64,000 bases of DNA, taken from the sequence record LR756504.1; one strand, 5' to 3'. A program made the position numbers and the translations under genes. Shown here one piece after another: positions 2,135 through 36,122 of this stretch. Under the pieces are notes generated by a model. That model ran no database searches and was not told the origin of the DNA. It worked only from the letters and a program-made list of their open reading frames with translations. Positions within the stretch are counted from its first letter, which is position 1, and each line of letters opens with the position of its first letter.

Positions 2135-2488
2135 TTACAATAAAGTTTTAATGATAAATTTTCTTGGTATCTCATTATTTACCAATACTTTACACATTTT
2201 ATTAATCTTTCTGTATTTTTTGATAATTTCGATAAAATAGTAAACTTTTGTTCCAAATGTAGCATCGTAACTAATATGTAAGTTCACCTCTTCATTATCA
2301 TGTTTTTCGAGAGTGATATGTACATTTTTATCAAGAAATTCTATTTTAGCAGAAACGTTTATCTTAGCAGAATAAAACAAGATAGTATGTGAATATTCGT
2401 ATATAGGTTCTCTGAATTCGAATTTTTCACCACTTTCATTAAAAATTTTTAGAGCCAAGTCTATACACTCTTGCTTTTCCATAAACAA
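2135..2488 (-). CDS. Hypothetical protein with C-terminal RxxxIxxLL tag
   Basis: 117-aa ORF in co-directional operon; ends RKFIIKTLL. Confidence 0.75.
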   Translation of the reverse strand: MFMEKQECIDLALKIFNESGEKFEFREPIYEYSHTILFYSAKINVSAKIEFLDKNVHITLEKHDNEEVNLHISYDATFGTKVYYFIEIIKKYRKINKMCKVLVNNEIPRKFIIKTLL

Positions 2489-2522
2489 AATTATGGAATT
2501 ATTTACGAAAAAGCAAGCTTTA

Positions 2523-2825
2523 TTAAAAAATGTTATTATCTTTAAATAAAATAGCTTCTAAAAGTTTAACTTTTTCTTCTAAAAGTCTAATTTTCTCTTC
2601 TTGGAATTCATTATTTAAATTATCAATTCTCTCACCACGGGTAGGTGGAGCTAATAAATTAGTCTTCAATTCAATCAATCTATTGGATTCGCCACGTGTG
2701 CCAATTCTATGAAATTCTATTTTAGGTGGATAATATTCATTGTTTAATATTGCAAATTCTCTATCATCAATTTTTATGGCTAAAGATTCTACAATTGATA
2801 TTAGTTCAAGTAAAGTATCTTTCAT
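2523..2825 (-). CDS. Hypothetical protein, coiled-coil C-terminus
   Basis: 100-aa ORF in co-directional operon. Confidence 0.7.
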   Translation of the reverse strand: MKDTLLELISIVESLAIKIDDREFAILNNEYYPPKIEFHRIGTRGESNRLIELKTNLLAPPTRGERIDNLNNEFQEEKIRLLEEKVKLLEAILFKDNNIF

Positions 2826-2826
2826 G

Positions 2827-3495
2827 TTATTTATCTTCTAATACATCATCAATTTTACTTTTCCTTTCACTTTTAATATAAGTTAAAGGAACATAAATAT
2901 CATTTCTTACAACCGATACAAAAATTATTTTATCAGAATTTTCTTTTTCTAAAATATGAAGAATAGGTTCTTTTTTATAAGCTTTTATTGTTGGCCATAC
3001 ATTATAGTCACCCTCTACTATTTCTATCCATGATGTATTTGGTGGTGGATTATGAGTAACTTTAGAATAGTATTTAAAATCTGATGACCATTTATCAATA
3101 CTATTTTTAATTTTTACTATATCTTTTATATTAGTAGGTGATAATTTTCCGCGATATTCATTTGCTTGCATAAAAGTCATATTATAACTTCTACTAATTT
3201 TTAATATACTGGATTTCTTAATTAAGACACCACCATCATCTATAATAGATTTTAATTTATTTAAAATATTGGGTGAATATTCATCTACGTTTCTATTAAA
3301 TCCTAAACTTTTTATTATTTTAATATCATCATCACTTATTAGTTCGAATTCATCTAATATTTTTTTATGTGTTTCTTCACTATCTTCTTTTAATTCATTG
3401 AAGATTCCAAAACTATTCCATGATGTATAATTTAGTTTAGGTACATTGAATATACCAACTCTATTAGCTTTTTTCTTTTTTAAAAATCCAAACAT
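2827..3495 (-). CDS. Hypothetical protein with C-terminal RxxKIxxVL tag
   Basis: 222 aa; ends ERKSKIDDVLEDK; start overlaps the nrtR stop. Confidence 0.8.
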   Translation of the reverse strand: MFGFLKKKKANRVGIFNVPKLNYTSWNSFGIFNELKEDSEETHKKILDEFELISDDDIKIIKSLGFNRNVDEYSPNILNKLKSIIDDGGVLIKKSSILKISRSYNMTFMQANEYRGKLSPTNIKDIVKIKNSIDKWSSDFKYYSKVTHNPPPNTSWIEIVEGDYNVWPTIKAYKKEPILHILEKENSDKIIFVSVVRNDIYVPLTYIKSERKSKIDDVLEDK

Positions 3496-4157
3496 TATAT
3501 TTCAAAATAAAAACCGTTCTCTAATTTATTTTCGTATTTCTTTTTATTAAATTTAAATAGACTACCTGCTCTATACGGCACATCCATTTGCTTCTCACTC
3601 AATTGATCAATAATATTTAATTTTAGAAATTTCTTTCTAAAATTTCTTCTATCAAATGGTATATCTAAGATAGTTTCATATAAACTTTGTAATTGAGAGA
3701 ATGGAAATTTAGATGGTAATAACTCAAATCCTATTGGTTGATATGATACTTTACTTTGCAGTCTTCTATATGCAATTTCAATTATGTTTATATGATCGAA
3801 TGCTATCAATGGGAGAGTCTTAACTGAAAACCATTTTGCGTCACATGCATCTGTTTTTGCGTGTAATAGATGTTTATCAGGATTTACTAAACCATAATAT
3901 GCAACAGACACAATTCTTTCTCTTGGATCTCTTTTTACTTCACCAAAAGTATACAGTTGTTCTAAATAAATATCTTCAATACCTGCTTCTTCTTTTAATT
4001 CTCTTTCTACTGCATCATCAACAGACTCTTCTTCTAAAACAAAACCTCCAGGTAATGCCCAAGAATCTTGAAAAGGTTCATATTTTCTTTTTATTAAAAG
4101 AATTTTCAAATCTTTTTCAACATAACCAAATACTACTGCATCTACTGTTAATTTCAT
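3495..4157 (-). CDS. nrtR: NrtR-family NUDIX + winged-helix transcriptional regulator of NAD metabolism
   Basis: TVDAVVF, WALPGGFV, RELKEEAG, LEQLYTFG..RDPR, FDH, LPSKF..SQLQSLYE, DRRNFRKK motifs. Confidence 0.9.
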   Translation of the reverse strand: MKLTVDAVVFGYVEKDLKILLIKRKYEPFQDSWALPGGFVLEEESVDDAVERELKEEAGIEDIYLEQLYTFGEVKRDPRERIVSVAYYGLVNPDKHLLHAKTDACDAKWFSVKTLPLIAFDHINIIEIAYRRLQSKVSYQPIGFELLPSKFPFSQLQSLYETILDIPFDRRNFRKKFLKLNIIDQLSEKQMDVPYRAGSLFKFNKKKYENKLENGFYFEI

Positions 4158-4432
4158 TAATGATAAAATTCGTCCAATTCAATTTTTTTACCTCTATACT
4201 CGTGTTCTGATTCATCGAGATATATTATATGACCATTTTTAATAAATGAATGACATTTAATATTTTTATGAGAAATTATTTTAATATCTGCATTTATTGT
4301 CGGTGTATAATTATCACCATTCCATTCAATTTTATCTGTATCTACAGAATGATTTGATGAACAAGCTTTACACCAAAATAATAGTTTTTTCTCACCTCTT
4401 ACAATCGCTTCGTATATTTTTAGCTTTCCCAT
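4157..4432 (-). CDS. Small metal-binding protein, DUF6527-like
   Basis: FWCKAC...H, WNGD..TPT, CHSFIKNG.I.YL pattern. Confidence 0.6.
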   Translation of the reverse strand: MGKLKIYEAIVRGEKKLLFWCKACSSNHSVDTDKIEWNGDNYTPTINADIKIISHKNIKCHSFIKNGHIIYLDESEHEYRGKKIELDEFYH

Positions 4433-4433
4433 T

Positions 4434-4655
4434 TTATTTCCATTTTATTACGTGTTCTTGTTTTACTTCCCAAAAACCAGATGTTGCCTTTTTGTAGAAA
4501 ACAACATCAGAAATATCAGAATCATATACAAATTCATTATATTCATTAAACCATTTGTGAACAAGTCCTGAAGCTGTACCTATTCCAATTTTTTCACCAA
4601 TGTCTGAAATAACTCCAACTGGTGGATCAATTTTAGTGTTAATATAAATTTTCAT
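4434..4655 (-). CDS. Hypothetical protein
   Basis: 73-aa ORF tightly packed in operon. Confidence 0.7.
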   Translation of the reverse strand: MKIYINTKIDPPVGVISDIGEKIGIGTASGLVHKWFNEYNEFVYDSDISDVVFYKKATSGFWEVKQEHVIKWK

Positions 4656-4701
4656 ATTTATTTTTATTTTTTTAATTATAGTATAAAATTCATTAAATGT
4701 T

Positions 4702-5055
4702 TTATTTAAAAAATTTTAAAATTTTCATATGTCTCGAAATTTCTTCAATTGTATCAATTCTAAGTTTACAACTAGATATAAAACCTTGATTATTAGTTTG
4801 TATTATTACTGGTTTAGCAGTTATAATGATAAAATACTTTCCTTTTTTAGTATCAAAAAGTATTAAATCTCTCCATTCCATATCACTTTTCCATATTTGA
4901 AAGTATTTTGTCAGTTCTATGTCTTTATTTTCCGTATCTATGAAAATTTCACATGATTTATTAGTGAATGCTAATTGCGTAGAAAATGAATAAGTTTCTA
5001 ATTGTAATAATTTTTTATTTTCCCATTCAATGAAAACCATAGAAAATACATGCAC
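4702..5055 (-). CDS. Hypothetical protein, weakly tail-tube-like, C-terminal RxxKIxxFF tag
   Basis: YFQIW...WRDLIL...AKPVII; ends SRHMKILKFFK. Confidence 0.65.
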   Translation of the reverse strand: MHVFSMVFIEWENKKLLQLETYSFSTQLAFTNKSCEIFIDTENKDIELTKYFQIWKSDMEWRDLILFDTKKGKYFIIITAKPVIIQTNNQGFISSCKLRIDTIEEISRHMKILKFFK

Positions 5056-5088
5056 TATTTTATGTATGTATTCTATGTATATTTCTTC

Positions 5089-5424
5089 CTATTGTAATTC
5101 TTTTATTGCTTGTTCGTACTTTTCAACAAACCAACTATTAGTAATATTATTAATATCTGCTGATATTTGACTATTTACTCTAATCATAGTCTGTCCAATA
5201 GGCGATTTTAAAAACAATAAAATTTCGTCAATATCTGATTCTGTTAAATTTTTCTCATAAAATGGTAAAATTCTTTCTTCTAATTCTTCAATATTAAAAT
5301 GTCTTTTAAATTGCGAACTTAAAACTGATTTTTCACCATCACCGTCTATTAAAGCGCTTAATTGTGCTTTAGTTAAATCATAAAATTGAGTTAACTTTAA
5401 AAATTCTTTTATTTTATCTTTCAT
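5089..5424 (-). CDS. DUF2059-like protein
   Basis: PFYEKNLTESDIDEILLFLKSPIGQ matches the Y...(L/F)T..E...l..F..SP.G pattern. Confidence 0.7.
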   Translation of the reverse strand: MKDKIKEFLKLTQFYDLTKAQLSALIDGDGEKSVLSSQFKRHFNIEELEERILPFYEKNLTESDIDEILLFLKSPIGQTMIRVNSQISADINNITNSWFVEKYEQAIKELQ

Positions 5425-5765
5425 AATAAATCTTTTATTTTGTCTTTTCGTATTTCGTATTTTAACATTTTATTTGTGTATTCATCTGATACATTGAAAT
5501 AGCAATCATACATTAATGATACTTCATATAAACCATCTCTATCAACAGTTGAAATACTTGTAGGAAATACACCATTTAATATAAACCCTGACCATTTTTC
5601 ATTTTTTTTATATGTTAAAAATATTTCTTTTGCTTTAACATTATAATTAACTATATTTTTTGACCATTCCAAATAAAATTCATAATTTAATGATGGTATG
5701 TCAAATGTTATAATGTCTTTATTTATAGTATAAGAATTTAAAATTATGTAACTTGGAAAATTCAT
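5421..5765 (-). CDS. Short gp19-like (tail tube) fragment protein with C-terminal RxxKIxxLL tag
   Basis: FYLEW...KEI...FILNGVFPTSI...EVSLMYD resembles the gp19-family C-terminal half; ends IRKDKIKDLL. Confidence 0.5.
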   Translation of the reverse strand: MNFPSYIILNSYTINKDIITFDIPSLNYEFYLEWSKNIVNYNVKAKEIFLTYKKNEKWSGFILNGVFPTSISTVDRDGLYEVSLMYDCYFNVSDEYTNKMLKYEIRKDKIKDLL

Positions 5766-6454
5766 TATTTACTTAGAATTTTATCAATCAATCCATAACC
5801 TAATGCTTCTTTAGCATCTAACCATTTATCTCTATCACAATCTCTCCATACCTTCTTAAATGGTTGTTTTGTGTTATCTGCTAATGTTTGTACTAATTCT
5901 CTCTTAATTTTTTTAATTTCTTTAGCTTCAATTTCTATATCAGATGCTTGTCCCCAAGTTCCACCAAGAGGTTGGTGTATCATAACTCTACTTCTACTAA
6001 GTGAACATCTTTTTCCTTCTGTACCATGACTTAAAATTACAGCAGCCATAGAAGCTGCTAATCCTGTACAAACAGTTGCTACATCAGTTTCAACTAAATC
6101 CATTACATCGAGAATGGAATTACCATCATAAACAGAACCACCTGGGCTATTAATGTAAAGTTTAATATCAGCCGTTTTATCTATAGATGTTAAATAAAGA
6201 AATTGTGCGGATATAACATTTGCAACATAATCATCAATTTCAGTTCCTAAAAAAATAATTCTATCCATCATTAATCTCGAAAAGACATCCATTATAGCAA
6301 TATTTAAATTTCTCTCTTCTACTATAGCAGGTGTTAAAGATGCTTGTGGAAATAGTTTTTTATATTTATCTAATGTGGTGGAAGGTACACCTTTAGATTT
6401 AGCAAATAGTGCAAAGTCTTTATCTAAATTCATAGTTTTTTCTATTTTTTTCAT
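5765..6454 (-). CDS. clpP: ATP-dependent Clp protease proteolytic subunit
   Basis: EER...MDVFSRLMMDRIIFLG, YINSPGGSV, AASMAAVIL, MIHQPLGG, CDRD motifs; Bacteroidota-like N-terminus. Confidence 0.96.
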   Translation of the reverse strand: MKKIEKTMNLDKDFALFAKSKGVPSTTLDKYKKLFPQASLTPAIVEERNLNIAIMDVFSRLMMDRIIFLGTEIDDYVANVISAQFLYLTSIDKTADIKLYINSPGGSVYDGNSILDVMDLVETDVATVCTGLAASMAAVILSHGTEGKRCSLSRSRVMIHQPLGGTWGQASDIEIEAKEIKKIKRELVQTLADNTKQPFKKVWRDCDRDKWLDAKEALGYGLIDKILSK

Positions 6455-7999: not shown

Positions 8000-8443
8000 T
8001 TATTCAGCATCTTCTTCAATATCTAAGTCTTCACCTTCTTCATCTTCAGTTTTCTCTTCGCCTTCTTCTTCGTGAGATTCTTCGGATTCTTCATCATCAG
8101 CAATTAAGATAGCTTGAACTTTATCTTCAATAGCATCAACAATAGCATCAGCAATGACATCTTTGTCTTCATCATCACCTAATTCATTCATAACACCATC
8201 AATAATATCTCTAAGATTATCAGCATAATTGGAATCTAAAATAGCAACAATTTTATCTTTTAATTCTGTGTTTTCTTCTTCAACGTCTTCTTCGTGAGAT
8301 TCTTCATCATCAGCAAATTCATCATCATTATGAGTTTCTTCTGTATTATTATCTTCTAATTCGTCTGGTAATAGCGCATCATCTTCGAATTCATGTAAAT
8401 AGGATTCTTTGAATAATGAGAAAGATTTAATTCTTCTTTTCAT
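8000..8443 (-). CDS. Highly acidic protein with capsid-targeting-like N-terminus
   Basis: MKRRIKSFSLFKE|S; D/E-rich; TTATATATA upstream. Confidence 0.75.
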   Translation of the reverse strand: MKRRIKSFSLFKESYLHEFEDDALLPDELEDNNTEETHNDDEFADDEESHEEDVEEENTELKDKIVAILDSNYADNLRDIIDGVMNELGDDEDKDVIADAIVDAIEDKVQAILIADDEESEESHEEEGEEKTEDEEGEDLDIEEDAE

Positions 8444-8585: not shown

Positions 8586-9248
8586 ATGAAGATTAAATAC
8601 CCAAGAAGTTTTCACATTCCATACTCAGAAAATTGTACTACAGATGATAAAATGTGTAAATCTGATGCACATTTCGAAAATGAAGTAGTTGTTGGAACTA
8701 TAAAAATGGATGGTGAAAATACAACAATATACAACGATTATATTCATGCTAGATCATTATCATCGAATATGGATACGGAAGACCGTAGATGGATAGATAC
8801 ATTAAGACTTTTAAAAATTCGAGGTAATATATCAGAAACTCAAAGAATTGTTGGTGAAAATTTATTTTATAAACATACTTGTAATTATAATAGTTTATTG
8901 GATTTTTTTTATATGTTTTCTTTATGGGATGGTGATGTGTGTTTAAGTTGGGAAGAAACTAAAAATATTGCAAATAAGTTAAATTTGGTTACTGTACCAG
9001 AATTTTATTATGGTATTTATGATAAAGATAAAATATTAAAAGATTTTGATAATTACATAAAAAATTCTTCTGATGATGTTGAAGGATTTGTTATTAGAAA
9101 AGCTGACAGTTTTAATATTAATGATTTTAGTAATAATTTAAACAAATTTGTTAGAAAAACGTTTATTATACCACAAAATCACTGGAGACATAGTAAAAAA
9201 GAATTTAATAAATCTATTGATGGTGTAAATCCTTGGGAAAAATTATGA
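8586..9248 (+). CDS. RNA ligase (Rnl2-like / ATP-dependent nucleotidyltransferase family)
   Basis: KYPRSFH.P, KMDGEN (motif I), GENL, FSLWD, EGFVIR, KFVR. Confidence 0.85.
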   Translation: MKIKYPRSFHIPYSENCTTDDKMCKSDAHFENEVVVGTIKMDGENTTIYNDYIHARSLSSNMDTEDRRWIDTLRLLKIRGNISETQRIVGENLFYKHTCNYNSLLDFFYMFSLWDGDVCLSWEETKNIANKLNLVTVPEFYYGIYDKDKILKDFDNYIKNSSDDVEGFVIRKADSFNINDFSNNLNKFVRKTFIIPQNHWRHSKKEFNKSIDGVNPWEKL

Positions 9249-9724
9249 AATATAGAGTAAAGCAAGATGTAAGAAAAGGAAGATTTTATCCACAAATAAG
9301 AATTTTAGGTTTGTGGTTATATTTTAGCTATGATAATTCTATTATAATAGCTAAAACAAAAAATGCTTATTATACGGATAGTGTGGAGACATCGTGGGCG
9401 TGCGTAAATGTTCATAAGCATCATAAGGGAACTAATGGAACTACATATGAATATTTACCCAATATGCTCGGATTTAGACTTAAAAAGGTAACTAAAAATG
9501 GTAATATTAAATATCATGCGCAAAAAAGATTTATCTTTATATGGTATAGATTTGGTAGAAATAATGATATAAATTATGAAAGACATGTACACTATAGTGC
9601 CCAAAGTGGATGGGATTATATTATAAGATTAGATACACTATTTAAAACACCAAAGCCGAAAAAAGTACTTTACCATTACCCAGAAAAAACAAGAAAAGAA
9701 AAAATTAAATCTTTAAAGGTATGA
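9245..9724 (+). CDS. Hypothetical protein with internally duplicated module and C-terminal RxxKI tag
   Basis: KYRVKQ..RFYPQ.R.LGLW and FRLKKV..KYHAQKR.IFIW repeats; ends RKEKIKSLKV. Confidence 0.7.
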   Translation: MKYRVKQDVRKGRFYPQIRILGLWLYFSYDNSIIIAKTKNAYYTDSVETSWACVNVHKHHKGTNGTTYEYLPNMLGFRLKKVTKNGNIKYHAQKRFIFIWYRFGRNNDINYERHVHYSAQSGWDYIIRLDTLFKTPKPKKVLYHYPEKTRKEKIKSLKV

Positions 9725-10057: not shown

Positions 10058-10103
10058 AAGGAACTAATAATAAATAAAGCTATTCTAATATTTTTTCTAT
10101 TTT

Positions 10104-10904
10104 CTATTTTCTTCCTAGTCCAAAGTAAGCTCTTAATTTAGATTCATAATCCTTAACTTTTAGTATCTTTGGTTCATCAATTGATGGTGGAATATAAACT
10201 AATGCGCAAGAATCAACGTGAATATCATATTCAGAAAGAATTAATTTATATAAATTTAATTGAATTGAATACTTATTTAATTCATTCTCCCATTCATCAT
10301 GAAATGGTGCTTTAAGTTTTTGCCAACATTTATCAGCATCAGTGGACATTTTAGCATTAGTTTTATAATCTAAAATCATCAATTTACCATTTCTCATAAA
10401 AAGTCCATCAATAGTTCCAGCCAATTTTAATTTTCTTGAAAATATTCTTAATTCTTGTGCAATTGGAATTACATTAGTTAATTTTGATTCATATAATGTT
10501 TCAAATTTATCAATCCTTCTTAGGGTTTCTAAGTCTTCGAAATTATCTCTTGTGATTGTTGATCCAGGTGTAAATTTATTTTCAATATAAAAATGAACAT
10601 TTGTACCCATATCACAAGCAGTATCCCTCTTTTTATCCCATTCGCCAATAATTTCTTTTATTGTCAAATCTAAATCAGGATCATTATCTTTTATTTGCTC
10701 ACGCGAAATACCTCTTTTCTCAGCTATTCTATCTTTAGCTTTTCTCTTACTCCAATATTCAGCATCAAATGGTTCTGAGAAATTTTTAATAAAAGTAGTT
10801 ACTGATGTTAATTTCTCTTTTCCATATGTATAAGCATGTGCTTTTTCATCGAAAACAAAATTATCATCATTAAATATTTTTATTTTGTCTAAAATTTCTT
10901 GCAT
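10104..10904 (-). CDS. PD-(D/E)XK exonuclease (RecB/Cas4-like phage nuclease)
   Basis: SVTT, GTNVH.YIE, ELRIFS, AGTIDGL, ILDYKT, YSIQLNLY. Confidence 0.88.
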   Translation of the reverse strand: MQEILDKIKIFNDDNFVFDEKAHAYTYGKEKLTSVTTFIKNFSEPFDAEYWSKRKAKDRIAEKRGISREQIKDNDPDLDLTIKEIIGEWDKKRDTACDMGTNVHFYIENKFTPGSTITRDNFEDLETLRRIDKFETLYESKLTNVIPIAQELRIFSRKLKLAGTIDGLFMRNGKLMILDYKTNAKMSTDADKCWQKLKAPFHDEWENELNKYSIQLNLYKLILSEYDIHVDSCALVYIPPSIDEPKILKVKDYESKLRAYFGLGRK

Positions 10905-10986: not shown

Positions 10987-11334
10987 ATGGAAACTATAAT
11001 TATCAACTTAGACAGTGATGAATCATTATCAAATATTGCACAATATAGTTTAACTTGTAATGTTTCAAAATCTAAAAATAGAAAATTTTTTAGAAAATGG
11101 ATTAATGATATTTTTAGTTATGAGGTTAGTGGAAGTCGTGCTAAACATATTATATTTATATGGAATAATGATATTATTGGATTTGGTAATGTGATAATAA
11201 CATCAATAGAAACATATGTTGGTGATGAAAATAGAATGGAAGTTAGTTTAGTATATGATTACAATTTGAATATTAATAATAACTCAGAAATGAAAAGACT
11301 AATGAGAAAAAAAATAATTAATCAATTAATTTAA
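10987..11334 (+). CDS. Short tail-tube-like protein with C-terminal RKKIIxxLI tag
   Basis: FFRKWINDI...ITSI...EVSLVYDY; similar to 5421-5765. Confidence 0.5.
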   Translation: METIIINLDSDESLSNIAQYSLTCNVSKSKNRKFFRKWINDIFSYEVSGSRAKHIIFIWNNDIIGFGNVIITSIETYVGDENRMEVSLVYDYNLNINNNSEMKRLMRKKIINQLI

Positions 11335-16862: not shown

Positions 16863-17354
16863 TCTATTATATGTAATGAATTGTATATTTAATTCAACAT
16901 TCTCTTTTTTATCAAAATCTGTAATATTTTCAATATTGTGTATAGAGAAATTTTTCAATTCATTCTCTAAAAATTTGATATTAGCATCATATTTTCTTTC
17001 ACATTCGACTTTCGTTAATTCTATCACATCTATATAAGGCATAAATAGTTGACAAATTTCAGAACCACCAATAACCCAAATATCCTCTGTTTTAGCCATT
17101 TCAAGAACTGGTATAATTGAATCAAATATCAAATCAGGATTTTTATTTAACTCCATATAAGCCCTTGAAATCACTATATTTGTCCTATTAGGAAGCTTGA
17201 ATGGTAAGCTCTCCCATGTCTTCCTTCCCATAACAACAGTTTTCTTTGATGTTAATTCTTTAAATCTTTTTAAGTCCTTTGCGAAATGGTATTGTAAACT
17301 ATTTTCAAATCCAATACCCCAATTATTATCACATGCTAATATTATACTTATCAT
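16848..17354 (-). CDS. folA: Dihydrofolate reductase
   Basis: IILACD.NWGIG, DLKRFKELT, VVMGRKTWESLP..LPNRTNIVIS, WVIGG. Confidence 0.95.
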   Translation of the reverse strand: MISIILACDNNWGIGFENSLQYHFAKDLKRFKELTSKKTVVMGRKTWESLPFKLPNRTNIVISRAYMELNKNPDLIFDSIIPVLEMAKTEDIWVIGGSEICQLFMPYIDVIELTKVECERKYDANIKFLENELKNFSIHNIENITDFDKKENVELNIQFITYNRKKDS

Positions 17355-17533
17355 TTTAGTAACTCTTTTATAATTTTTTTGCGGTTTTTAATTTTTTCAT
17401 TTCTAATTTGTATTTCCAACTTTTTTATATGCTCTTCAAAAGCATCAGCAGGATAAATTCTACCCGAATTTGCTTGTGGAAACTGTAGAAATATACTTTC
17501 TAATATTATTCTATCGTTCTGACTCGATTTCAT
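17351..17533 (-). CDS. 60-aa protein resembling the gp21 prohead protease N-terminus fused to an RKKIIxxLL tag
   Basis: LESIFLQ...NSGRIYP...EE; ends NRKKIIKELLK; no catalytic His/Ser region. Confidence 0.55.
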   Translation of the reverse strand: MKSSQNDRIILESIFLQFPQANSGRIYPADAFEEHIKKLEIQIRNEKIKNRKKIIKELLK

Positions 17534-17627: not shown

Positions 17628-17999
17628 TTATTTCTTAATAGCATTTATAATTTTCTCAACTTTTGCTACAGTATCATCCAATACTGCTAAAAATTCACCG
17701 TCAACTTGTGCAAAATTACAACTCTCTAAATCTGAACCTAACACATTTTCCCAATTATCAAATGTTTTTTTACTTTTTATAATTAAACAATCATCGGTAT
17801 AAAAAACTCCAAGTGAAGTAATATCTTTATTACCCACTTCTTTTCTGATGATTTCATATTGTTCAGCAGTAATCTTTTTAATTTCATCTTTACATCCTAA
17901 AAGATTTAAAACATCGGTTTCTTTAGTAGTTAAAGATTCAGTAATTTTTTCTATATTTCTTGTTTCTTCGCTGAAATAAGTGAATTTCTTAATTGACAT
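17628..17999 (-). CDS. Hypothetical protein with capsid-targeting-like N-terminus
   Basis: MSIKKFTYFSEE; AATATATA upstream. Confidence 0.7.
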   Translation of the reverse strand: MSIKKFTYFSEETRNIEKITESLTTKETDVLNLLGCKDEIKKITAEQYEIIRKEVGNKDITSLGVFYTDDCLIIKSKKTFDNWENVLGSDLESCNFAQVDGEFLAVLDDTVAKVEKIINAIKK

Positions 18000-19909: not shown

Positions 19910-20197
19910 ATGAACTGGCAAGAAAAGAAAGATAATTGGCAACCATCGGAACGTTATTTAAAACGTGAAGAAAATAAATTTATAATGAAAATGATTAGTA
20001 AAATGCCATCTTCATATAAAGAATGGTGGTCATATTTAAAAGATTCACAAAAAGATTTAGTATTTAGAAGATATGAAACTTCTTATTATAAGGAAAGTTT
20101 TTCTAATAGTATTTTTTGGAAATGGTGTTATTCCGATATTAAAATAGATAAATTTGAAGTAAGGAAAAAAAGAATAAATGATATTTACGATGAATAA
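19910..20197 (+). CDS. Hypothetical protein with C-terminal RKKRIxxIY tag
   Basis: 95 aa; ends VRKKRINDIYDE. Confidence 0.7.
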   Translation: MNWQEKKDNWQPSERYLKREENKFIMKMISKMPSSYKEWWSYLKDSQKDLVFRRYETSYYKESFSNSIFWKWCYSDIKIDKFEVRKKRINDIYDE

Positions 20198-23905: not shown

Positions 23906-23909
23906 CAAA

Positions 23910-23981
23910 GGGGGTTAAGCTAATCAGGTGAAAGCAGGCCATTGAAGCTGGTCAGAGACGGATCGATACCGTTATCCCCCA
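23910..23981 (+). tRNA. tRNA-Phe(GAA)
   Basis: GGGGGTT/ATCCCCC acceptor, GCT/AGC D-stem, GGCCA-TTGAAGC-TGGTC, GACGG-ATCGATA-CCGTT; atypical A8 and A54. Confidence 0.75.
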
Positions 23982-23999
23982 CAATGTTATTATTTTGGT

Positions 24000-24021
24000 N
24001 NNNNNNNNNNNNNNNNNNNNN
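24000..24021. other. Assembly gap (22 N)
   Basis: Run of N right after the tRNA cluster. Confidence 1.
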
Positions 24022-24031
24022 TGTATATTTA

Positions 24032-24667
24032 TTACCACATTTCTGATGGTAAATTTGGATTATGCTTCTGCTCACTTGATTCAGAATCATCTTCATCCGA
24101 TACTTCTTCTTCAAACTCATCCATATCCGCTTCATCATCTTCGTCTATTTCATCGTGTTTAAAATCATCATGATGGTGATGTGAATAAGCTTCTTCGTCG
24201 TCCCAATCATCAAATTTTAAAACATGTGAATCATCATCTTCGTCTTCGTCATCATCTTTAGAATGACTAAAATCATCCTCAGCAAAATCGTCATCCGAAT
24301 TATCTTCTGAATCATCTTCATCAAATTTTGCATTTCTTATAAAATTTGAAATTTCTTCATCAGAATCTTCTTCACGCGGCTCTTTTCCATCTTCATGGTT
24401 AATCATGTCTTCTTCCTCTTCTTCTAATGTAGCTTCCTCATCTGACATAACTTCACAAGATGCTTTAGCTGCATTTACATCCTCTAATGCACTATGAAGT
24501 TCTTCTTCGGACATAACACTTAACTCATCTTTTGTAAAAGCATGATACTCACATTCATTTGGATCAATGCTATTTTGAATAGCTAATATTTTATCAACCA
24601 ATCTGTTAAATATTTCTAAATCAAGGCTTTCGTTTATGAATGTTTTAAATCTTTTTAAATGTTTCAT
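24032..24667 (-). CDS. Highly acidic protein with capsid-targeting-like N-terminus
   Basis: MKHLKRFKTFINE|S; D/E-rich C-terminal half; TTATATATA upstream. Confidence 0.75.
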   Translation of the reverse strand: MKHLKRFKTFINESLDLEIFNRLVDKILAIQNSIDPNECEYHAFTKDELSVMSEEELHSALEDVNAAKASCEVMSDEEATLEEEEEDMINHEDGKEPREEDSDEEISNFIRNAKFDEDDSEDNSDDDFAEDDFSHSKDDDEDEDDDSHVLKFDDWDDEEAYSHHHHDDFKHDEIDEDDEADMDEFEEEVSDEDDSESSEQKHNPNLPSEMW

Positions 24668-26145: not shown

Positions 26146-26817
26146 ATGAAATATTTAAAATTATATGAAGATTTTTCGGATTGGGATGATGAAGAGGAAG
26201 AAGATGATGAAGATATTATAAAAATTGATAAATTTATAGAAACATTAGAATCAAATCCTAAACTTATTAAAGATTATGTATTCTACAATATTACTAATAA
26301 TGATGAATATGATAATAATAAGTATATAGTTTCTGCATATAATTTAGAATCTGCTAAAATAGCACAAAATAAATATACAAATTTTGAAGAATTTTTAAAT
26401 AATATAAATATGGTTAACTTTGTTGTATATATTACAAATATAAATAAAGTGAAAATTTTCAATTATAGATTAGCATATTTAGATATTTATTTAAATAGAT
26501 ACTTAGAATTACCTAATGTAACTAAAATTATATTGGATAATATAGAAAAAGATGATAGTTTAGTTTATGCAATATTTACATCATCACCTGATAATATGTG
26601 TTTTTATGATAAAAATTTTAATATTATAATGAATTACATTAATTACTTTTTAGAATCATATGGTAAATATTTAATTTATTACAAAGTAGTAAAAAAAGAT
26701 AGAACATCTACATATTTTGTTTTAGACTCACTTACTGGTGAATTAGTTACTACAAAAACTTTAAAGGATTATAGTGAAATAAATAATGAATTATTAGAGG
26801 AGTTGGGCATAAAATAA
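26146..26817 (+). CDS. Hypothetical protein with capsid-targeting-like and acidic N-terminus
   Basis: MKYLKLYEDFSDWDDEEEEDD, shared with 44060-44470. Confidence 0.75.
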   Translation: MKYLKLYEDFSDWDDEEEEDDEDIIKIDKFIETLESNPKLIKDYVFYNITNNDEYDNNKYIVSAYNLESAKIAQNKYTNFEEFLNNINMVNFVVYITNINKVKIFNYRLAYLDIYLNRYLELPNVTKIILDNIEKDDSLVYAIFTSSPDNMCFYDKNFNIIMNYINYFLESYGKYLIYYKVVKKDRTSTYFVLDSLTGELVTTKTLKDYSEINNELLEELGIK

Positions 26818-26874: not shown

Positions 26875-27312
26875 TCATTTTATTTTTCTAGCATCTACTA
26901 AAAAAATGCCTTTTGGTGTTTTAAATTGAATTTTATATTCAGGATATTCGACTTCATTTTCAATAGATACCAATGTTATATTATTTGATATTGGATATTC
27001 ATCTATTATTGGATATTCAATATCATCCTTATTCTGTAAATTTTCTTTAATTTCTGACAATTCTTTTTGAGCAGTTTTAAAAATTGGTTCATCATTAGAA
27101 ACATTAGCTACGAAATCTATCATAGAAGCGGCTTTCTTTTTTCCAACTTTTTTAACTAGATCTTCTGCTAGTTCTTTACCTGAAGTATATACATCTGATA
27201 TTTTTTTATCTTCTGGAATACCAAGCACATCGTGCATTTTACCCTTTTTGGGATGGACATCTTTTGCCCATTTCTTTTCATTTAAAAATGTGTTAAATTT
27301 CTTAATGGCCAT
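26875..27312 (-). CDS. Small basic protein with capsid-targeting-like N-terminus
   Basis: MAIKKFNTFLNE|KKW; TTATATATA upstream. Confidence 0.75.
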   Translation of the reverse strand: MAIKKFNTFLNEKKWAKDVHPKKGKMHDVLGIPEDKKISDVYTSGKELAEDLVKKVGKKKAASMIDFVANVSNDEPIFKTAQKELSEIKENLQNKDDIEYPIIDEYPISNNITLVSIENEVEYPEYKIQFKTPKGIFLVDARKIK

Positions 27313-31845: not shown

Positions 31846-31926
31846 AAAAATTATATATGAAAATGATAAAATGTTTAGAATTTAACCTTTACATTTTTAT
31901 ATATAATAAAAATTATCATTTTAATA

Positions 31927-32787: not shown

Positions 32788-32815
32788 AAAAGGGAGTTTT
32801 TAACTCCCTTTTTTT
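32786..32815. terminator. Bidirectional intrinsic terminator
   Basis: AAAAAAGGGAGTT-TTT-AACTCCCTTTTTTT. Confidence 0.85.
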
Positions 32816-33981
32816 ATTACATTTTTTAAATAATTAATTCGATTACAATCAGTAGATTCATCAATCATTATTATATAACCCAACGACTTTATTTTACTAT
32901 TAGAAAATGTATTAATATTTTTAAAATAAATATCCCATGTCAAGTCTACATAATATACTTTATTTTTAAATACCAAAATATTATTAGCGTGTAGCCCATT
33001 ATTAGTACTCAACGTTATATGATAACACTCTATATTATTTTTATTTAGAAAATGCTTTAAAATGATAGCATACCCATTACATATAGTAGTTCGATATAGA
33101 ATTATTTTTTCTATATTAGTGTAATTTGTATATGTAGTAGTATTTTTTTGTGCGTATGATAAAAATGCTCTAAAGAAATAATATGTTACGAATATCTTTT
33201 CACTATCACTAAAATTCGTATTTGTGTATAAATAATCACATATTTGTTTTTCGTTTATAAACCGTTTAGTTCTAATTACATTTTTAAAGAAAACATATGC
33301 ATCATTTTGAATTGACATTACTTTACCAGAAGGAGATTTAGTAGAGTTCATTAAATCAAAATCTTCGGAATATAAATTTAATAAATCTACATTCTTATAT
33401 TTACTCATGAATTTTACTAAATTCGAATTATTAACTTTAAATATTTTATCTCTTGCTATAGTATCCTTTTTCGAAAGGAAATTATACAATTCACTGAGTT
33501 TAAGTGTTTGTCGAATATCACTTTTTATTTCTTTAATATCATCAATTTCTATAGGATGACTTGATAATGCATTATCAACAAGTATTTTAAACTCATCAAT
33601 AATGGGAGTGTTATATAGACTATCTATCCAATTTAAAAACTTAGGATACACATCTTCTTTGGAAAAATATTTTAATATGGCATCATTTTGTACGATATAA
33701 TTATAATAGAAAGCATCAGAATTTATATTATATAAACTATGAAGCTCATAATACTTCATTTCAGATGAAATATAAGTAATATTATCATTAAATTTTATAC
33801 CAAATGGTGTTAAACTATACCCACTATAGCTACCTTTAGCTATCACACGTGTTAAATCATAACACTTTTTATATTCGGCGTTATCGTAATAAGTTTTTAG
33901 ATAGGTATCCAAATTTAAAGTTTTTGAAAAACCTGTAATGGATATTGAAAATAGAATTAACAATATAAACAATCTCTTCAT
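32800..33981 (-). CDS. Secreted transglutaminase-like protein
   Basis: Signal peptide; ICNGYA (Cys), HANN (His), VDLTWD (Asp) triad; host promoter TAACTTTG at 34000-34007 on minus strand. Confidence 0.75.
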   Translation of the reverse strand: MKRLFILLILFSISITGFSKTLNLDTYLKTYYDNAEYKKCYDLTRVIAKGSYSGYSLTPFGIKFNDNITYISSEMKYYELHSLYNINSDAFYYNYIVQNDAILKYFSKEDVYPKFLNWIDSLYNTPIIDEFKILVDNALSSHPIEIDDIKEIKSDIRQTLKLSELYNFLSKKDTIARDKIFKVNNSNLVKFMSKYKNVDLLNLYSEDFDLMNSTKSPSGKVMSIQNDAYVFFKNVIRTKRFINEKQICDYLYTNTNFSDSEKIFVTYYFFRAFLSYAQKNTTTYTNYTNIEKIILYRTTICNGYAIILKHFLNKNNIECYHITLSTNNGLHANNILVFKNKVYYVDLTWDIYFKNINTFSNSKIKSLGYIIMIDESTDCNRINYLKNVIKKGS

Positions 33982-34056
33982 ATTTCTATAATTAGAGAAC
34001 AAAGTTATAAAATATTGTAGACTAATACAAATATTTTATAACTTATTTTGAGAAAT

Positions 34057-34557
34057 TTATTCTATAGATTTAAAAAAATGTTGATAATCTGGATTTTTCC
34101 ATACACCGCCCCAATTCCACCCATATTTCTTAAAAATTTGGATTACATCATCATTTATAGTGCCTTTATTTCCTATTTTATACACTCTACCTTCAATTTT
34201 ATGTGCATTTATATGTATCCATGGATTTTGAAAAGGATTTATATCTATGGCACATCCTTTAGCATGTTCAGATAATTCGGTTGTACCTACTACGACTCTA
34301 TAATTAAAGCACGAAGTATTGTTTGCTTTACAAGACTGATAATCAGACCATTCAAATTCAGAAATAGGAATAATTGAATGTATAGGAAATTTAATAGAAA
34401 ATAAATCTTGAAATATTCTTTTTACATCATCCTCTAATTTTTTATGCACAATTATCTGTCCTTGATGAATTGTATCATCAAATCCATAATATTTAACAGT
34501 TGTAATAACCAAAACTTCTAAAATTTCTTTAGGAATTTTTTTACCTTTTAATATCAT
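34057..34557 (-). CDS. M15 family peptidase (endolysin candidate)
   Basis: FNYRVV, SEHAKG.AIDINP, WGG.W, DYQHF. Confidence 0.88.
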   Translation of the reverse strand: MILKGKKIPKEILEVLVITTVKYYGFDDTIHQGQIIVHKKLEDDVKRIFQDLFSIKFPIHSIIPISEFEWSDYQSCKANNTSCFNYRVVVGTTELSEHAKGCAIDINPFQNPWIHINAHKIEGRVYKIGNKGTINDDVIQIFKKYGWNWGGVWKNPDYQHFFKSIE

Positions 34558-34566
34558 TTGTAAGTT

Positions 34567-35514
34567 TTAATATCTCGGTTCTATTACGCTTGGTTTATAT
34601 TTAATGTCATTATCACATAATATATTCAAACATTCTACTAAATCTGCTAAATGTAGAGATAGTACACTATTATAATCATCTTTTCTATAACCACCGAATA
34701 GTGAAAGAGCTAAAGGAAATGGCTTTTTTAATTCTTCTTCAATACTTTTAACAAAGTTGTATACTATTTTAGAACATTCTATCCATTGTTCAGTATTTAA
34801 TTGTGTACCATAGTCGTCCCAAAAATGGGAGTCAGCACCATGACAGAATACTAAATAATGTGTTTTTCCTTGAATTATTCGTTCTCTTAATTTTTCTAAT
34901 CTTTCCTGTAAATCAATAATGTAATATTTACTATGATATTGAGGATTAATATTACATTCTGTAGGAACAGCTTCATTTAAATCAGGTGCAAAATACCTAC
35001 TGTCTTCTAAACTATTTCCAAAATGCCCATCTAAATCGAGATATGCACCAGATAATCCAAGTTCTCTATAAATTTTTAGTGATGCTATTACTTGTCCTGA
35101 AAATGTACAAAATCCCATTCCTTCATCAGGTGTAGCATGATGGAAACCAGCAGTATTACTAAATGATACTTCATCTGGATTTTTTATAGAATTTAAAATA
35201 GCATTATATAAACTCGCATTAGTATATCTTACCGAATCTGCAAATTGAGCATTCCACTTCAAACCATTTGATGATGCTTGTGGTTCTATACCATTAAAAA
35301 AATTGTCAACATATTTTTCGAAGTGTGCTGTATAAAAAACTTCTTTTTCGAAAGGTTCAAACTCCTTGATGTCGAAATATTCCAATAATCCGTTTTTATG
35401 GATGTATTCTATAATTTTTTTTGGTTTTAATGGTGATTTGGAAATATTTGGCACATTTTCGTCCATTAAAACCATTCTTTCATCATAAAATGTTGATATT
35501 GTCTTTTTTCTCAT
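34567..35514 (-). CDS. Histone-deacetylase-family (Zn-dependent) deacylase
   Basis: GFHHA, GFCTFSG, LDLDGHFGN, GADSH..D, GGY. Confidence 0.88.
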   Translation of the reverse strand: MRKKTISTFYDERMVLMDENVPNISKSPLKPKKIIEYIHKNGLLEYFDIKEFEPFEKEVFYTAHFEKYVDNFFNGIEPQASSNGLKWNAQFADSVRYTNASLYNAILNSIKNPDEVSFSNTAGFHHATPDEGMGFCTFSGQVIASLKIYRELGLSGAYLDLDGHFGNSLEDSRYFAPDLNEAVPTECNINPQYHSKYYIIDLQERLEKLRERIIQGKTHYLVFCHGADSHFWDDYGTQLNTEQWIECSKIVYNFVKSIEEELKKPFPLALSLFGGYRKDDYNSVLSLHLADLVECLNILCDNDIKYKPSVIEPRY

Positions 35515-35616
35515 TGCTCATAATAACGTTTTTTTTAATATAAATGTTATATAAATAATGAGAAAAAAATTTAAGTGTCGATAAAATATATTGAGAATAT
35601 GTTTAATATATACAAC

Positions 35617-35862
35617 ATGAAAAATAAAAAAAGAAAACACTTGAAGTCATTCAATCAATTCTTGAAGCCTTCTTTTCCAAATTATCCACCGATGGGAATA
35701 TCATATTTTGATAATGACCAAGATTGTTTTATGAATGGTGTAATAGAAGAAGATGAAGAAATTTTTAAAAAAGGTGAAATTTGTACTTGTGGTGGAAATG
35801 GTTGTTCAGAGTGTAATGGTATAGGCTTTAAAAGATTAGATTCAAATGAGGAATTAGACTAG
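35617..35862 (+). CDS. Small Zn-ribbon protein with capsid-targeting-like N-terminus
   Basis: MKNKKRKHLKSFNQF; CTCGGNGCSECNG; AATATATA upstream of 35617. Confidence 0.65.
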   Translation: MKNKKRKHLKSFNQFLKPSFPNYPPMGISYFDNDQDCFMNGVIEEDEEIFKKGEICTCGGNGCSECNGIGFKRLDSNEELD

Positions 35863-36122
35863 TTAACAATATCATCTATAATAACTTTCCTTCTAACATT
35901 TTTATTTTTAAAATTTAAGCAATTTTGACAAACAGGTATAAAAGTATTATAATATTTCTCTTCGTATGATATTTTACCTCTCTTTTTACAGTATTGACAT
36001 TTTTTAAATTTTTTAGACAGATATAATATTGGTATAGCAAATATTGACAATATTAATACTATAACCAATATTATTACTCCTAATATAATTTTTTGAAATT
36101 TTAATAGAATCTCTTTTTTCAT
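35859..36122 (-). CDS. Membrane-anchored CxxC protein with C-terminal RxxIIxxIV tag
   Basis: TM helix, CQYC...CQNC; ends RRKVIIDDIVN. Confidence 0.7.
   Translation of the reverse strand: MKKEILLKFQKIILGVIILVIVLILSIFAIPILYLSKKFKKCQYCKKRGKISYEEKYYNTFIPVCQNCLNFKNKNVRRKVIIDDIVN

Follow-up and report, generated by a model that had tools for sequence, protein, structure and literature searches.

Several systems are known in which a short terminal peptide gives unrelated proteins a common destination. In phage T4, the capsid targeting sequence (CTS), a label of roughly ten residues, is the only feature shared by a hypervariable set of small, partly anti-defence internal proteins (PMC3012670). The CTS is N-terminal and is removed by the prohead protease. 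Encapsulin cargo-loading peptides and microcompartment encapsulation peptides are likewise short terminal peptides or amphipathic helices that address unrelated cargo to one protein shell. C-terminal peptides with basic and hydrophobic residues, namely the ssrA tag, the MuA-type C-motif and the ClpX-binding tail of SspB, hand many unrelated proteins or adaptors to a single AAA+ protease. The small phage protein SPO1 Gp53 docks on the host ClpC unfoldase in an adaptor-like manner (PMC6873191).

Two other cases are relevant. Poxvirus ankyrin/PRANC (F-box-like) multigene families lie near the genome ends and combine variable target-binding parts with a constant short C-terminal element that plugs into a degradation machine; that system is eukaryotic, ubiquitin-based and built on one repeat family. 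PIP-box and phage clamp-binding motifs often sit at the C-terminus, have h-x-x-a-a spacing and connect many partners to one hub. The tag described below is carried by a large fraction of the proteins of certain huge phages. It differs from the CTS in lying at the C-terminus, from encapsulin and microcompartment peptides in sequence, from Gp53 in being a shared motif on a seventh of the proteome rather than a single protein acting on a host enzyme, from the PRANC element in being carried by hundreds of unrelated folds, and from clamp-binding motifs in a number of carriers far beyond any known set of clamp partners. No prior description of it was found.

A shared C-terminus on otherwise unrelated proteins

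The stretch of DNA analysed (the window) comprises 64,000 nucleotides and is 100% identical to LR756504.1, a 636-kb uncultured phage. A first-pass annotation reported that nine otherwise unrelated small proteins in this window share a C-terminal motif, and this observation holds. All nine open reading frames (ORFs) translate as described, with the motif ending 0-3 residues before the stop (Table 1). Two of the tags had been described as one residue shorter, but all nine fit a single register: R1, x2 (mostly K), x3, [K/I/R]4, I5, x6, x7, [L/I/V/F]8, x9. The statement that the proteins are unrelated is mostly right; with the tags trimmed, only 5421-5765 and 10987-11334 are detectably related (E 3e-6). 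It is also correct that none of the nine carries the N-terminal propeptide, and this holds statistically across the genome.

Table 1. Tag carriers and associated features within the window.
Position	Strand	Feature	Tag, its position and trailing residues	Matrix score	Further observations
2135..2488	-	Carrier, 117 aa	RKFIIKTLL (2138-2164)	19.1	Language-model lead only (0.89): Imm/SUKH-like immunity protein, not the tube fold
2827..3495	-	Carrier, 222 aa	RKSKIDDVL (2839-2865), then EDK		No Pfam or PHROG family
4702..5055	-	Carrier, 117 aa	RHMKILKFF (4708-4734), weaker tag, then K	10.2	Ortholog in L014 keeps RHVKILKFLK
5421..5765	-	Carrier, 114 aa; predicted Hcp/tail-tube fold (residues 1-96) plus C-terminal helix	RKDKIKDLL (5424-5450)	21.6 (top score)	Start overlaps the ClpP stop; 76%-identical ortholog P0002 has an identical tail
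5765..6454	-	Phage ClpP, 229 aa, with a ~50-aa N-terminal extension; not a carrier			Candidate part of the reader machinery; Pfam CLP_protease E 7.7e-69; one of three ClpP genes in the record
9233..9724	+	Carrier, 159-163 aa	RKEKIKSLK (9692-9718), then V		Paralog elsewhere in the genome (E 5.6e-5, tags trimmed)
10080..10904	-	PD-(D/E)XK nuclease (Pfam PDDEXK_1)	Interrupted: ...GRK-TAG-KIEKILE-stop (10083-10112; in-frame TAG at 10104-10106)		Ortholog in L014 ends GRKERIEKLFE
10987..11334	+	Carrier, 115 aa; paralog of 5421-5765	RKKIINQLI (11305-11331)		34% identity to 5421-5765, E 5e-7
17351..17533	-	Carrier, 60 aa	RKKIIKELL (17357-17383), then K	21.2
19910..20197	+	Carrier, 95 aa	RKKRINDIY (20162-20188), then DE	16.5
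24000..24021	.	Run of N, left unfilled; not part of the feature
35859..36122	-	Carrier, 87 aa; N-terminal membrane segment (TM-like, at residue 9) and four Cys	RKVIIDDIV (35865-35891), then N

Could the motif reflect only the composition of an AT-rich proteome rich in K, I and L? This possibility, named in advance as grounds for rejecting the tag, is excluded. Within the window, the nine carriers among 84 ORFs compare with 0.29 expected from the internal match rate. In the 288-kb assembly that holds the window there were 24 C-terminal matches against 0.52 expected (Fisher p 2e-27), whereas shuffling the last 20 residues of every protein gave a mean of 0.85 and at most 5; the top 24 matrix scores in that assembly all lie 0-4 residues from a C-terminus. 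Over the whole 636-kb record, 149 of 955 ORFs end in R-x-x-[KIR]-[IL]-x-x-[LIVFM] within 6 residues of the stop. A motif-free scan of C-terminal triads ranked R-x-x-x-I-x-x-L first, with 110 observed against 2.3 expected (p 9e-143).

Selection acts on the protein sequence. Synonymous codons at R1, K2, K4, L8 and L9 follow genome usage, with R encoded by AGA, AGG, CGA, CGC and CGT and L also drawn from more than one codon family, and the downstream DNA is not conserved. A nucleic-acid signal that happens to be read as these residues, such as translational coupling, a start-site enhancer or a promoter, has some points in its favour: 56% of carriers are followed within 5 nt by a same-strand gene, TGA stops are enriched (ATGA overlaps), and the ATA codon is over-used at I5 (80 against 49 expected, p 3e-8). 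However, the distance of the motif is fixed to the stop and not to the next start, 22% of carriers face a convergent gene, and 12% are followed by a gap of more than 40 nt. This explanation is close to refuted.

The tag recurs in four other huge phages, on 4-16% of ORFs, with D instead of K at position 2. R1 is conserved in 113 of 115 and I5 in 114 of 115 sequences, and position 4 is K, I or R in all but two. With the tag trimmed, 549 carriers from the five genomes fall into 448 BLAST clusters, of which 388 are singletons. Only 3 of 145 LR756504.1 carriers hit anything in the first 400 kb each of LR756502.1 and LR745206.1, yet each genome tags 15-16% of its ORFs. The tag stays constant while the cargo turns over between genomes.

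The carriers comprise different folds and domains, including a predicted Hcp/tail-tube fold, a riboflavin kinase, a PD-(D/E)XK nuclease and membrane proteins. For carrier 5421-5765, residues 1-96 of the AlphaFold2 (AF2) model (pLDDT 67) match Hcp1 8z7k_A with Z 8.2, rmsd 2.8 A and 91 aligned residues, and more than 30 tube or Hcp chains match at Z 5-7.5. All ten ESM Atlas structural neighbour sets with a name are tube/Hcp families. Modularity is also seen within one family: at least 18 of 115 representative homologs of a 936-aa carrier end in LRDxKIxxxL, while others end differently.

By contrast, a fifth relative, LR756501.1, lacks this tag. About 40 of its proteins, which are otherwise dissimilar, end in a different motif, D-P-Y-G-E-E-x-W.

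A proposed docking label for a common receptor

What could a motif of this kind do? The best reading is a short linear motif acting at the protein level, [hydrophobic]-x-R-(K or D/E)-x-(K/I/R)-(I/L)-(E/D/N/K)-x-(L/I)-(L/I)-(0-6 residues)-COOH, which would form the last turns of a C-terminal helix and has been placed on hundreds of unrelated, fast-evolving, mostly small accessory proteins in a clade of huge phages. In this view, it most likely works as a docking label: one conserved receptor would bind the invariant Arg and the I/L-x-x-L-L hydrophobic face, giving every carrier the same fate or place. The probability of this reading is put at about 0.55. The analysis itself establishes the enrichment, the selection at the protein level, the portability and the conservation across genomes. 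That a single receptor exists is inferred, its identity is speculative, and binding to, or degradation by, any Clp component remains an inference.

The interpretation offered by the first-pass annotation, a portable amphipathic-helix address label that recruits diverse cargo to one hub such as a membrane, a phage factory or a protease adaptor, is partly supported. A portable, protein-level label at the C-terminal end of a helix, found on soluble and membrane proteins alike, is supported; the reader of the label is not shown.

It is possible that there is no common receptor, and that the helix is an inherited structural or self-association element of one enormous, very diverged superfamily, spread by duplication and recombination. 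Many carriers do lie in tandem paralog arrays at the ends of the record, and many start with a G-D-x-V/I-x-V/I-K pattern that suggests small beta-barrels, although this fold was not confirmed. The tag also follows structured sequence without a linker. However, the tag is present directly after membrane segments, after a riboflavin kinase domain, on a PD-(D/E)XK nuclease, on the predicted Hcp/tube fold and on the 936-aa protein whose homologs often lack it. In the AF2 model of carrier 5421-5765, the last residues, which are of low confidence, do not pack on the domain. Moreover, one shared self-association helix on 150 different proteins in one cell would cross-link them, and this alternative is considered unlikely.

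Clp machinery as a candidate receptor

Which phage component might read the tag? The preferred candidate, although doubtful and inferred only from co-occurrence and precedent, is the phage's own Clp machinery: a ClpC-like unfoldase without an N-domain but with an M-domain and a VGF loop, together with ClpP and ClpS. On that reading, the tag would tether carriers, or what their variable domains hold, to the unfoldase for timed removal. Only 11 proteins of LR756504.1 occur in all five tag-bearing genomes and are absent from LR756501.1, and four of these are ClpP (three copies) and ClpS; this co-occurrence rests on one tag-free complete genome and is confounded by shared ancestry. The Clp ATPase of the tag-bearing genomes has an M-domain and a VGF loop, whereas that of LR756501.1 has neither, and that genome has no ClpP. 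SPO1 Gp53 provides a precedent for a phage protein docking on ClpC.

The argument from the position of clpP, said in the first-pass annotation to sit in the middle of the densest cluster, is weaker than it looked. ClpP itself is real, and is directly followed by a carrier in three genomes, but not in the 508-kb and 249-kb contigs. The densest carrier clusters are at the ends of the 636-kb record and not around ClpP. About 1,000 unique ORFs from roughly 65 other phage loci around ClpC-like genes, most of which lack an N-domain, carry only 2 such tags; Clp is therefore not sufficient. In addition, LR756501.1 has a tag system without ClpP. A complex prediction for the ClpC-like protein with the 114-aa carrier scored 0.00 (mark 0.32), a value that by the rule of the method is no evidence either way.

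The tag also departs from the described Clp signals, and its sequence differs from theirs. The ssrA-type degrons are recognised by the ClpX/ClpA pore through the last residues together with the free alpha-carboxylate, and are fixed at the extreme C-terminus. In LR756504.1, the number of residues after position 9 is none in 60, one in 33, two in 21 and three to six in 22 carriers, while in LR756502.1 and LR745206.1 it is mostly one to six. The SspB-type tail (XB motif) hangs on a flexible linker, but the 12 residues before R1 are depleted in Gly (0.31x) and Pro (0.67x), and the AF2 model shows a continuous helix at 94-106 running into the tag. The receptor of the SspB tail is the N-terminal zinc-binding domain of ClpX. 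No zf-C4_ClpX match was found in any of the four phage genomes searched, and the phage ClpX-like protein, which starts with a Lys-rich stretch and has no zinc-finger domain, is found only in LR756504.1.

Encapsidation and other possible destinations

Alternatively, the tag might load carriers into the virion (head or tail) so that they are injected with the DNA, as the CTS or encapsulin cargo-loading peptides do. The T-even internal proteins are the closest functional precedent. In LR756501.1, the alternative tag sits on a small T4-gp21-like (S77) protease homolog, although this match is below the Pfam cut-off, and one carrier family has the predicted Hcp/tail-tube fold. None of 31 carriers with an upstream gap has the TAnnTTTG box, against 96 of 407 other genes, which would fit non-early expression if the box marks host-type promoters. 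However, these phages already have an N-terminal motif of the T4 CTS pattern, K-x-[FY]-x-x-F-x-x-E (T4: MKTYQEFIAE, 10.1101/2021.01.19.427310), on 55-80 ORFs per genome. In three of the four megaphage genomes tested, that motif avoids tag carriers, with 3 against 8.6, 3 against 10.3 and 2 against 9.5 expected. About 7% of carriers have membrane segments, and 15% of the proteome is a lot to package. Membrane-anchored carriers do not fit a shell lumen, and no BMC shell gene was found. An encapsidation role is thus considered unlikely.

A label for a replication or assembly factory, for DNA via a sliding clamp, or for the inner face of the membrane is also unlikely. In favour of a clamp, I5-x-x-L8-L9 has PIP-box spacing, carriers flank the RFC-like clamp loader, and a 73-aa protein in L016, L021 and the 249-kb contig ends R-D-x-K-I-D-D-[IL]-F-D-x-F-D-F-D, which recalls the clamp-binding tail of the RB69 polymerase. 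However, the PIP-box is Q-x-x-[ILM]-x-x-[FY]-[FY], and its phage variant has an aromatic pair; in the tag, position 2 is K or D and not Q, and positions 8 and 9 are L or I. Four Pfam models detected no clamp gene, with no match to gp45, DnaN or PCNA, and the clamp loader is also present in tag-free LR756501.1. As for the membrane, the helix is amphipathic and basic in LR756504.1, and the motif is terminal with an i, i+3, i+4 hydrophobic pattern. MinD/FtsA-type helices are defined by physico-chemistry without invariant residues, whereas here R1 and I5 are 98-99% invariant. Position 2 is acidic in the other four tag-bearing genomes, and residues 6 and 7 are acidic or polar (acidic in those four), which is poor for lipid or DNA binding. 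A plain membrane-binding helix is unlikely, since R1 and I5 are almost invariant and 93% of carriers have no membrane segment.

Although somewhat less likely than not, a broader view is not excluded, in which huge phages run proteome-scale 'zip-code' systems. In this clade, a dedicated receptor would read a nine-residue C-terminal motif carried by 12-16% of all phage proteins, while a sister lineage would have independently installed the D-P-Y-G-E-E-x-W code, alongside a T4-like N-terminal capsid code. This would be a new layer of organisation of the infected cell, for sorting, timed destruction, or delivery of host targets to a phage machine.

The run of N within the window does not bear on these counts. 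It lies between tRNA-Phe (23909-23982) and the 3' end of ORF 24032-24667(-), and ORFs listed across it (23920-24138, 23995-24162) cannot be trusted. No carrier lies within 3.8 kb, the nearest being 19910-20197 and 35859-36122. Masking the 22 positions left the whole-genome count unchanged.

Data set and extent of the motif

The window has 26% G+C and is 100% identical to LR756504.1, an unannotated uncultured phage record of 636,363 bp, of which a 288,572-bp part (the 288-kb assembly) contains the window. By protein search, its relatives are other phage records of 635-735 kb and Cellulophaga phages. The analysis used the whole of LR756504.1, the related records LR756502.1, LR756501.1 and LR745206.1 in full, and two full IMG/VR contigs of 508 kb and 249 kb. 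Genes were called crudely, as the longest ORFs of 40 aa or more chosen greedily; starts are therefore uncertain, whereas C-termini depend only on stop codons and are robust. The run of N in the window lies between tRNA-Phe and the 3' end of an ORF on the minus strand. No carrier is closer to it than 3.8 kb, ORFs drawn across it should be ignored, and masking the same 22 positions in the whole-record analysis left all counts unchanged.

The first-pass annotation had described a shared C-terminal tag on nine otherwise unrelated small proteins, and this observation holds: all nine C-termini are as written. They share one register, R1, x2, x3, [K/I/R]4, I5, x6, x7, [L/I/V/F]8, x9, followed by 0-3 more residues, and the remark that some tags are one residue shorter is not needed. 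In the window, 9 of 84 ORFs carry the motif, against 0.29 expected from the rate of internal matches. In the 288-kb assembly, 24 matches are C-terminal against 0.52 expected (Fisher p 2e-27). Shuffling the last 20 residues of each protein, a comparison that had been set beforehand as a test, gave a mean of 0.85 and never more than 5. A position matrix built from these sites puts its 24 best hits in the whole proteome at C-termini. In the full record, 149 of 955 ORFs carry the tag when I or L is allowed at position 5, and a scan of all spaced residue triads, with no prior motif, ranks RxxxIxxL first (110 tails against 2.3 expected, p 9e-143).

The nine proteins were thus the edge of a feature that marks about 15% of the genes of this phage. 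Carriers are densest at the two ends of the record, with 47 in the first 50 kb and 27 in the last 36 kb, where they form tandem arrays of small paralogs. The coordinates of the features discussed here are collected in the table.

Coordinates of carriers and other features. L numbers are labels for loci and G numbers for longer sequences (G009 is the 249-kb contig).
Sequence	Position	Strand	Feature
Window	2135-2488		Carrier, 117 aa
Window	5421-5765		Carrier, 114 aa, next to ClpP
Window	10987-11334		Carrier, weakly similar to 5421-5765
Window	10080-10112	-	Interrupted tag of the PD-(D/E)XK gene
Window	23909-23982		tRNA-Phe
Window	24000-24021		Run of N
Window	8000-8443	-	ORF with N-terminal motif
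Window	17628-17999	-	ORF with N-terminal motif
Window	24032-24667	-	ORF with N-terminal motif; its 3' end faces the run of N
Window	26146-26817	+	ORF with N-terminal motif
Window	26875-27312	-	ORF with N-terminal motif
Window	43633-44043	-	ORF with N-terminal motif
Window	44060-44470	-	ORF with N-terminal motif
Window	50784-51428	-	ORF with N-terminal motif
LR756504.1	L036:14497-16443 (-), L025:1587-2744 (-), L007:14121-14405 (+), window 5765-6454 (-)		Phage Clp set
LR756501.1	Loci L066-L085, L119-L135; for example L073:5582-5887 (+), L126:12409-13491 (-), L127:466-1899 (-)		ORFs with the alternative C-terminal tag
L012	3844-12266 (G000 257844-266266)	+	PrkA / DUF444 (YeaH) / SpoVR (YcgB) gene trio
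L016	669-890	+	73-aa protein with extended tag
L021	1674-1895	+	73-aa protein with extended tag
G009	177918-178139	+	73-aa protein with extended tag
Window	37597-42699, and four more copies elsewhere in LR756504.1	+	Paralogs of a roughly 540-aa protein
L003	5313-5388 (G000 97313-97388)	+	tRNA with four-base anticodon
L011	6236-6311		tRNA with two-base anticodon
L029	8360-8435		tRNA with two-base anticodon
L032	13088-13164		tRNA with two-base anticodon
Window; L014	1079-2065 (-), 3495-4157 (-), 12620-13306 (-), 8550-9248 (+)		Nucleotide and NAD-related genes interleaved with carriers around ClpP

Selection on the protein

Does the motif reflect selection on the protein or on the DNA? The selection is on the protein. 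Synonymous codon use at R1, K2, K4, L8 and L9 matches the usage of the genome; Arg is written AGA, AGG, CGA, CGC and CGT, Leu, Ile and Val use many codons, and the DNA after the stop is not conserved. The motif keeps its distance to the stop and not to the next start, and 22% of carriers are followed by a convergent gene and 12% by a gap over 40 nt. One oddity remains, in that ATA is over-used at I5 (80 against 49 expected). A nucleic-acid signal that is merely read as these residues is considered very unlikely.

Diversity of the carriers

Are the carriers really unrelated? This is largely the case. With tags trimmed, BLASTP finds no pair among the 26 carriers of the 288-kb assembly, and phmmer finds three weak pairs, including 5421-5765 with 10987-11334. 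Over five genomes, 549 carriers form 448 clusters, 388 of them singletons. Pfam and PHROG scans of carriers found almost nothing, PDB sequence searches of conserved carriers and co-occurring unknowns found nothing, and a tblastn search with two array families against 50,697 phage records hit only the record itself.

The folds and domains that could be assigned differ from each other. The model of the 114-aa carrier next to ClpP has an Hcp/tail-tube fold over residues 1-96, with Z 8.2 to Hcp1 8z7k_A followed by dozens of tube proteins, and the ESM Atlas neighbours agree. By contrast, the 117-aa carrier at 2135-2488 does not share that fold, and its language-model lead is an immunity-protein family. 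Elsewhere the tag follows a riboflavin kinase domain and a PD-(D/E)XK nuclease, as well as bare membrane segments and a four-Cys module. Ten of 145 carriers have membrane-like segments. Many array proteins begin with a G-D-x-V/I-x-V/I-K pattern that suggests small beta-barrels; however, a single-sequence AF2 model of a 63-aa carrier had a pLDDT of 44, which is unusable, and the idea of an SH3-like barrel rests on the sequence pattern only.

In the AF2 model of the 114-aa carrier, a helix runs from residue 94 to 106, which is R1, while the final residues have pLDDT under 50 and do not pack on the domain. The 12 residues before R1 are poor in Gly and Pro. The tag is therefore the free end of a structured helix, as predicted by this model, and not a peptide on a floppy linker. 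A structural or self-association helix spread by descent, with no common receptor, appears unlikely.

Conservation across huge phages

A 76%-identical relative (locus L014) keeps the tags on the orthologs. When I or L is allowed at position 5, the tag is found on 142 of 997 ORFs in LR756502.1, 151 of 972 in LR745206.1, 96 of 790 in the 508-kb contig and about 11 of 267 in the 249-kb contig. R1, [K]4, [I/L]5 and [L/I]8 are kept, whereas position 2 is K in LR756504.1 (59%) and D/E/N in the others. The cargo is not kept: only 3 of 145 LR756504.1 carriers have any BLAST hit in the first 400 kb each of LR756502.1 and LR745206.1. A 936-aa carrier family has 115 representative homologs in global data, of which at least 18 end in L-R-D-x-K-I-x-x-x-L while others end differently. 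The tag is therefore gained and lost within a family.

In the window itself, the PD-(D/E)XK gene reads G-R-K-TAG-K-I-E-K-I-L-E-stop, where its ortholog reads G-R-K-E-R-I-E-K-L-F-E. This is an intact tag cut by one in-frame stop at tag position 3, and it represents either a very recent nonsense change or local read-through. General recoding of TAG was rejected, because no CTA-anticodon tRNA was found and there is no genome-wide excess of open frame after TAG. The tRNA search (ARAGORN) did report a tRNA with an eight-membered loop and a four-base 'tcta' anticodon beside a tRNA-Met, and three other tRNAs of undetermined type with two-base anticodons.

LR756501.1 (735 kb) has 1 match to the tag against 1.2 expected. 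Instead, about 40 of its ORFs (55-843 aa) end in [K/R]-[V/I]-[F/Y]-S-x-x-D-P-Y-G-E-E-x-W-x-x (DxYxxxxW, 41 against 1.9, p 2e-40), and two pairs that were compared share only that tail. One of these carriers is a small T4-gp21-like (S77) protease homolog, although below the Pfam cut-off. A candidate third tag, Y-x-x-x-x-W-L-F-G, appeared in pooled loci around ClpC-like genes but is an artefact, being one orthologous gene repeated at the same position in many related contigs.

All four large records also share an N-terminal motif, M-K-x-[I/L]-K-x-[F/Y]-x-x-F-x-x-E, on 55-80 ORFs each (KxFxxF, 39 against 4.5 expected), often followed by acidic low-complexity sequence. This is the 'propeptide' of the first-pass annotation, and it has the pattern of the T4 capsid targeting sequence MKTYQEFIAE (10.1101/2021.01.19.427310). 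In the three genomes with the RK/RD tag, the N-terminal motif and the C-terminal tag avoid each other: 3 against 8.6, 3 against 10.3 and 2 against 9.5 expected. This argues that the C-terminal tag is not the capsid address, and a virion-loading role is regarded as unlikely.

Candidate readers of the tag

Which protein might read the tag? Roughly 190 LR756504.1 proteins are conserved in LR756502.1 and LR745206.1. Eleven LR756504.1 proteins are present in all five tag-bearing genomes and absent from LR756501.1: three ClpP paralogs and ClpS, a HAD-like 168-aa protein next to ClpS, RNase R, a metallophosphatase, and four unknowns of 251, 151, 138 and 75 aa. LR756504.1 encodes a full Clp set, which comprises a ClpC-like ATPase, a ClpX-like ATPase without a zinc finger, ClpS and three ClpP genes. 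Several of the ClpP genes carry an N-terminal extension of tens of residues containing K-D-F-x-x-[Y/F]. The Clp ATPase of the tag-bearing genomes is ClpC-like, with no N-domain but with an M-domain insert and a VGF loop for ClpP, whereas the ATPase of LR756501.1 has an N-domain but neither an M-domain nor VGF, and that genome has no ClpP. One ClpP ortholog is followed directly by a carrier in three genomes.

However, this adjacency is absent in the 508-kb and 249-kb contigs, and about 1,000 unique ORFs from other phage loci around ClpC-like genes, most lacking an N-domain, hold only 2 such tags. In addition, the co-occurrence rests on a single tag-free genome. A complex prediction of the ClpC-like unfoldase with the 114-aa carrier scored 0.00, a value that is not evidence either way. 

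Two other candidates are excluded by their distribution. The ClpX-like protein occurs only in LR756504.1. The PrkA-DUF444-SpoVR module, a gene trio typical of bacterial stress and sporulation operons, is shared at 49-67% identity with LR756502.1 and LR745206.1, but PrkA is absent from the tag-rich, 97%-complete 508-kb contig.

Localisation elsewhere, such as to a clamp or a factory, is also considered unlikely. Models for clamps (gp45 C- and N-domains, DnaN, PCNA) and for the BMC shell gave no match. The 231-aa carrier beside the clamp loader was rejected as a sliding clamp, since it has no homolog in the other genomes. A 73-aa protein ends in R-D-x-K-I-D-D-[I/L]-F-D-x-F-D-F-D, which is the tag extended by an acidic-aromatic tail and resembles the clamp-binding C-terminus of the RB69 polymerase.

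Interpretation and comparison with known systems

The data fit a portable docking motif read by one conserved receptor, to which a probability of about 0.55 is given. The enrichment, the selection at the protein level, the portability and the conservation across genomes are demonstrated by the sequence analysis, whereas the existence of a single receptor is inferred, and its identity, together with any binding to or degradation by a Clp component, is speculative. The Clp machinery is the best single candidate, though a doubtful one. The proposal of the first-pass annotation, that the motif is an address label recruiting diverse cargo to one hub such as a membrane, a phage factory or a protease adaptor, is therefore partly supported: the label is supported, the hub is not shown.

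The nearest known systems are the T4 capsid targeting sequence, Clp C-terminal signals and SspB-type tethers, shell-loading peptides, and poxvirus PRANC families. In outline the tag would work like these, but for each of them it fails the defining features that could be tested. Literature searches on huge phages and megaphages, C-terminal motifs, capsid targeting, phage Clp tags and phage-nucleus import found no description of this motif. Terminal address tags as such are known; the present one is unusual for its scale and for the coexistence of different codes in sister phages.

Most genes of huge phages have no known function, and a label shared by one protein in seven gives a handle on hundreds of them at once. 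Identification of its reader would assign a common fate (degraded, sorted or delivered) to about 550 proteins in the five genomes examined, and to many more in metagenomes. The motif is short, sharply defined (R1, I/L5, L/I8) and has natural specificity variants, namely K against D at position 2 and a wholly different tag in a sister phage, which makes the question open to direct test although the phages are uncultured. If the reader is a protease or a compartment, the tag could also serve as a compact, orthogonal targeting or degradation tag. The simple terminal-triad enrichment test can be applied to any large viral genome to look for further such codes.

Expression and gene context

No RNA run containing this DNA was found; the only run that holds it is a soil metagenome that may be its source. 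In LR756504.1, none of the 31 carriers with an upstream gap of 40 nt or more has a TAnnTTTG box within 120 nt, against 96 of 407 other genes (p 5e-4). If that box marks host-type (Bacteroidota) promoters, carriers are not in that class, although this is an inference from a consensus only.

LR756504.1 contains seven paralogs of a roughly 540-aa protein with no family, PDB or confident Atlas match, which is single-copy in the three other tag-rich genomes and absent from LR756501.1. Around ClpP, where carriers are interleaved with nucleotide and NAD-related genes, the syntenic L014 annotation lists NUDIX (several), NAMPT/NAPRTase, dCMP deaminase and RNA ligase. The RNase R and a class II aminoacyl-tRNA synthetase are encoded elsewhere in the record.
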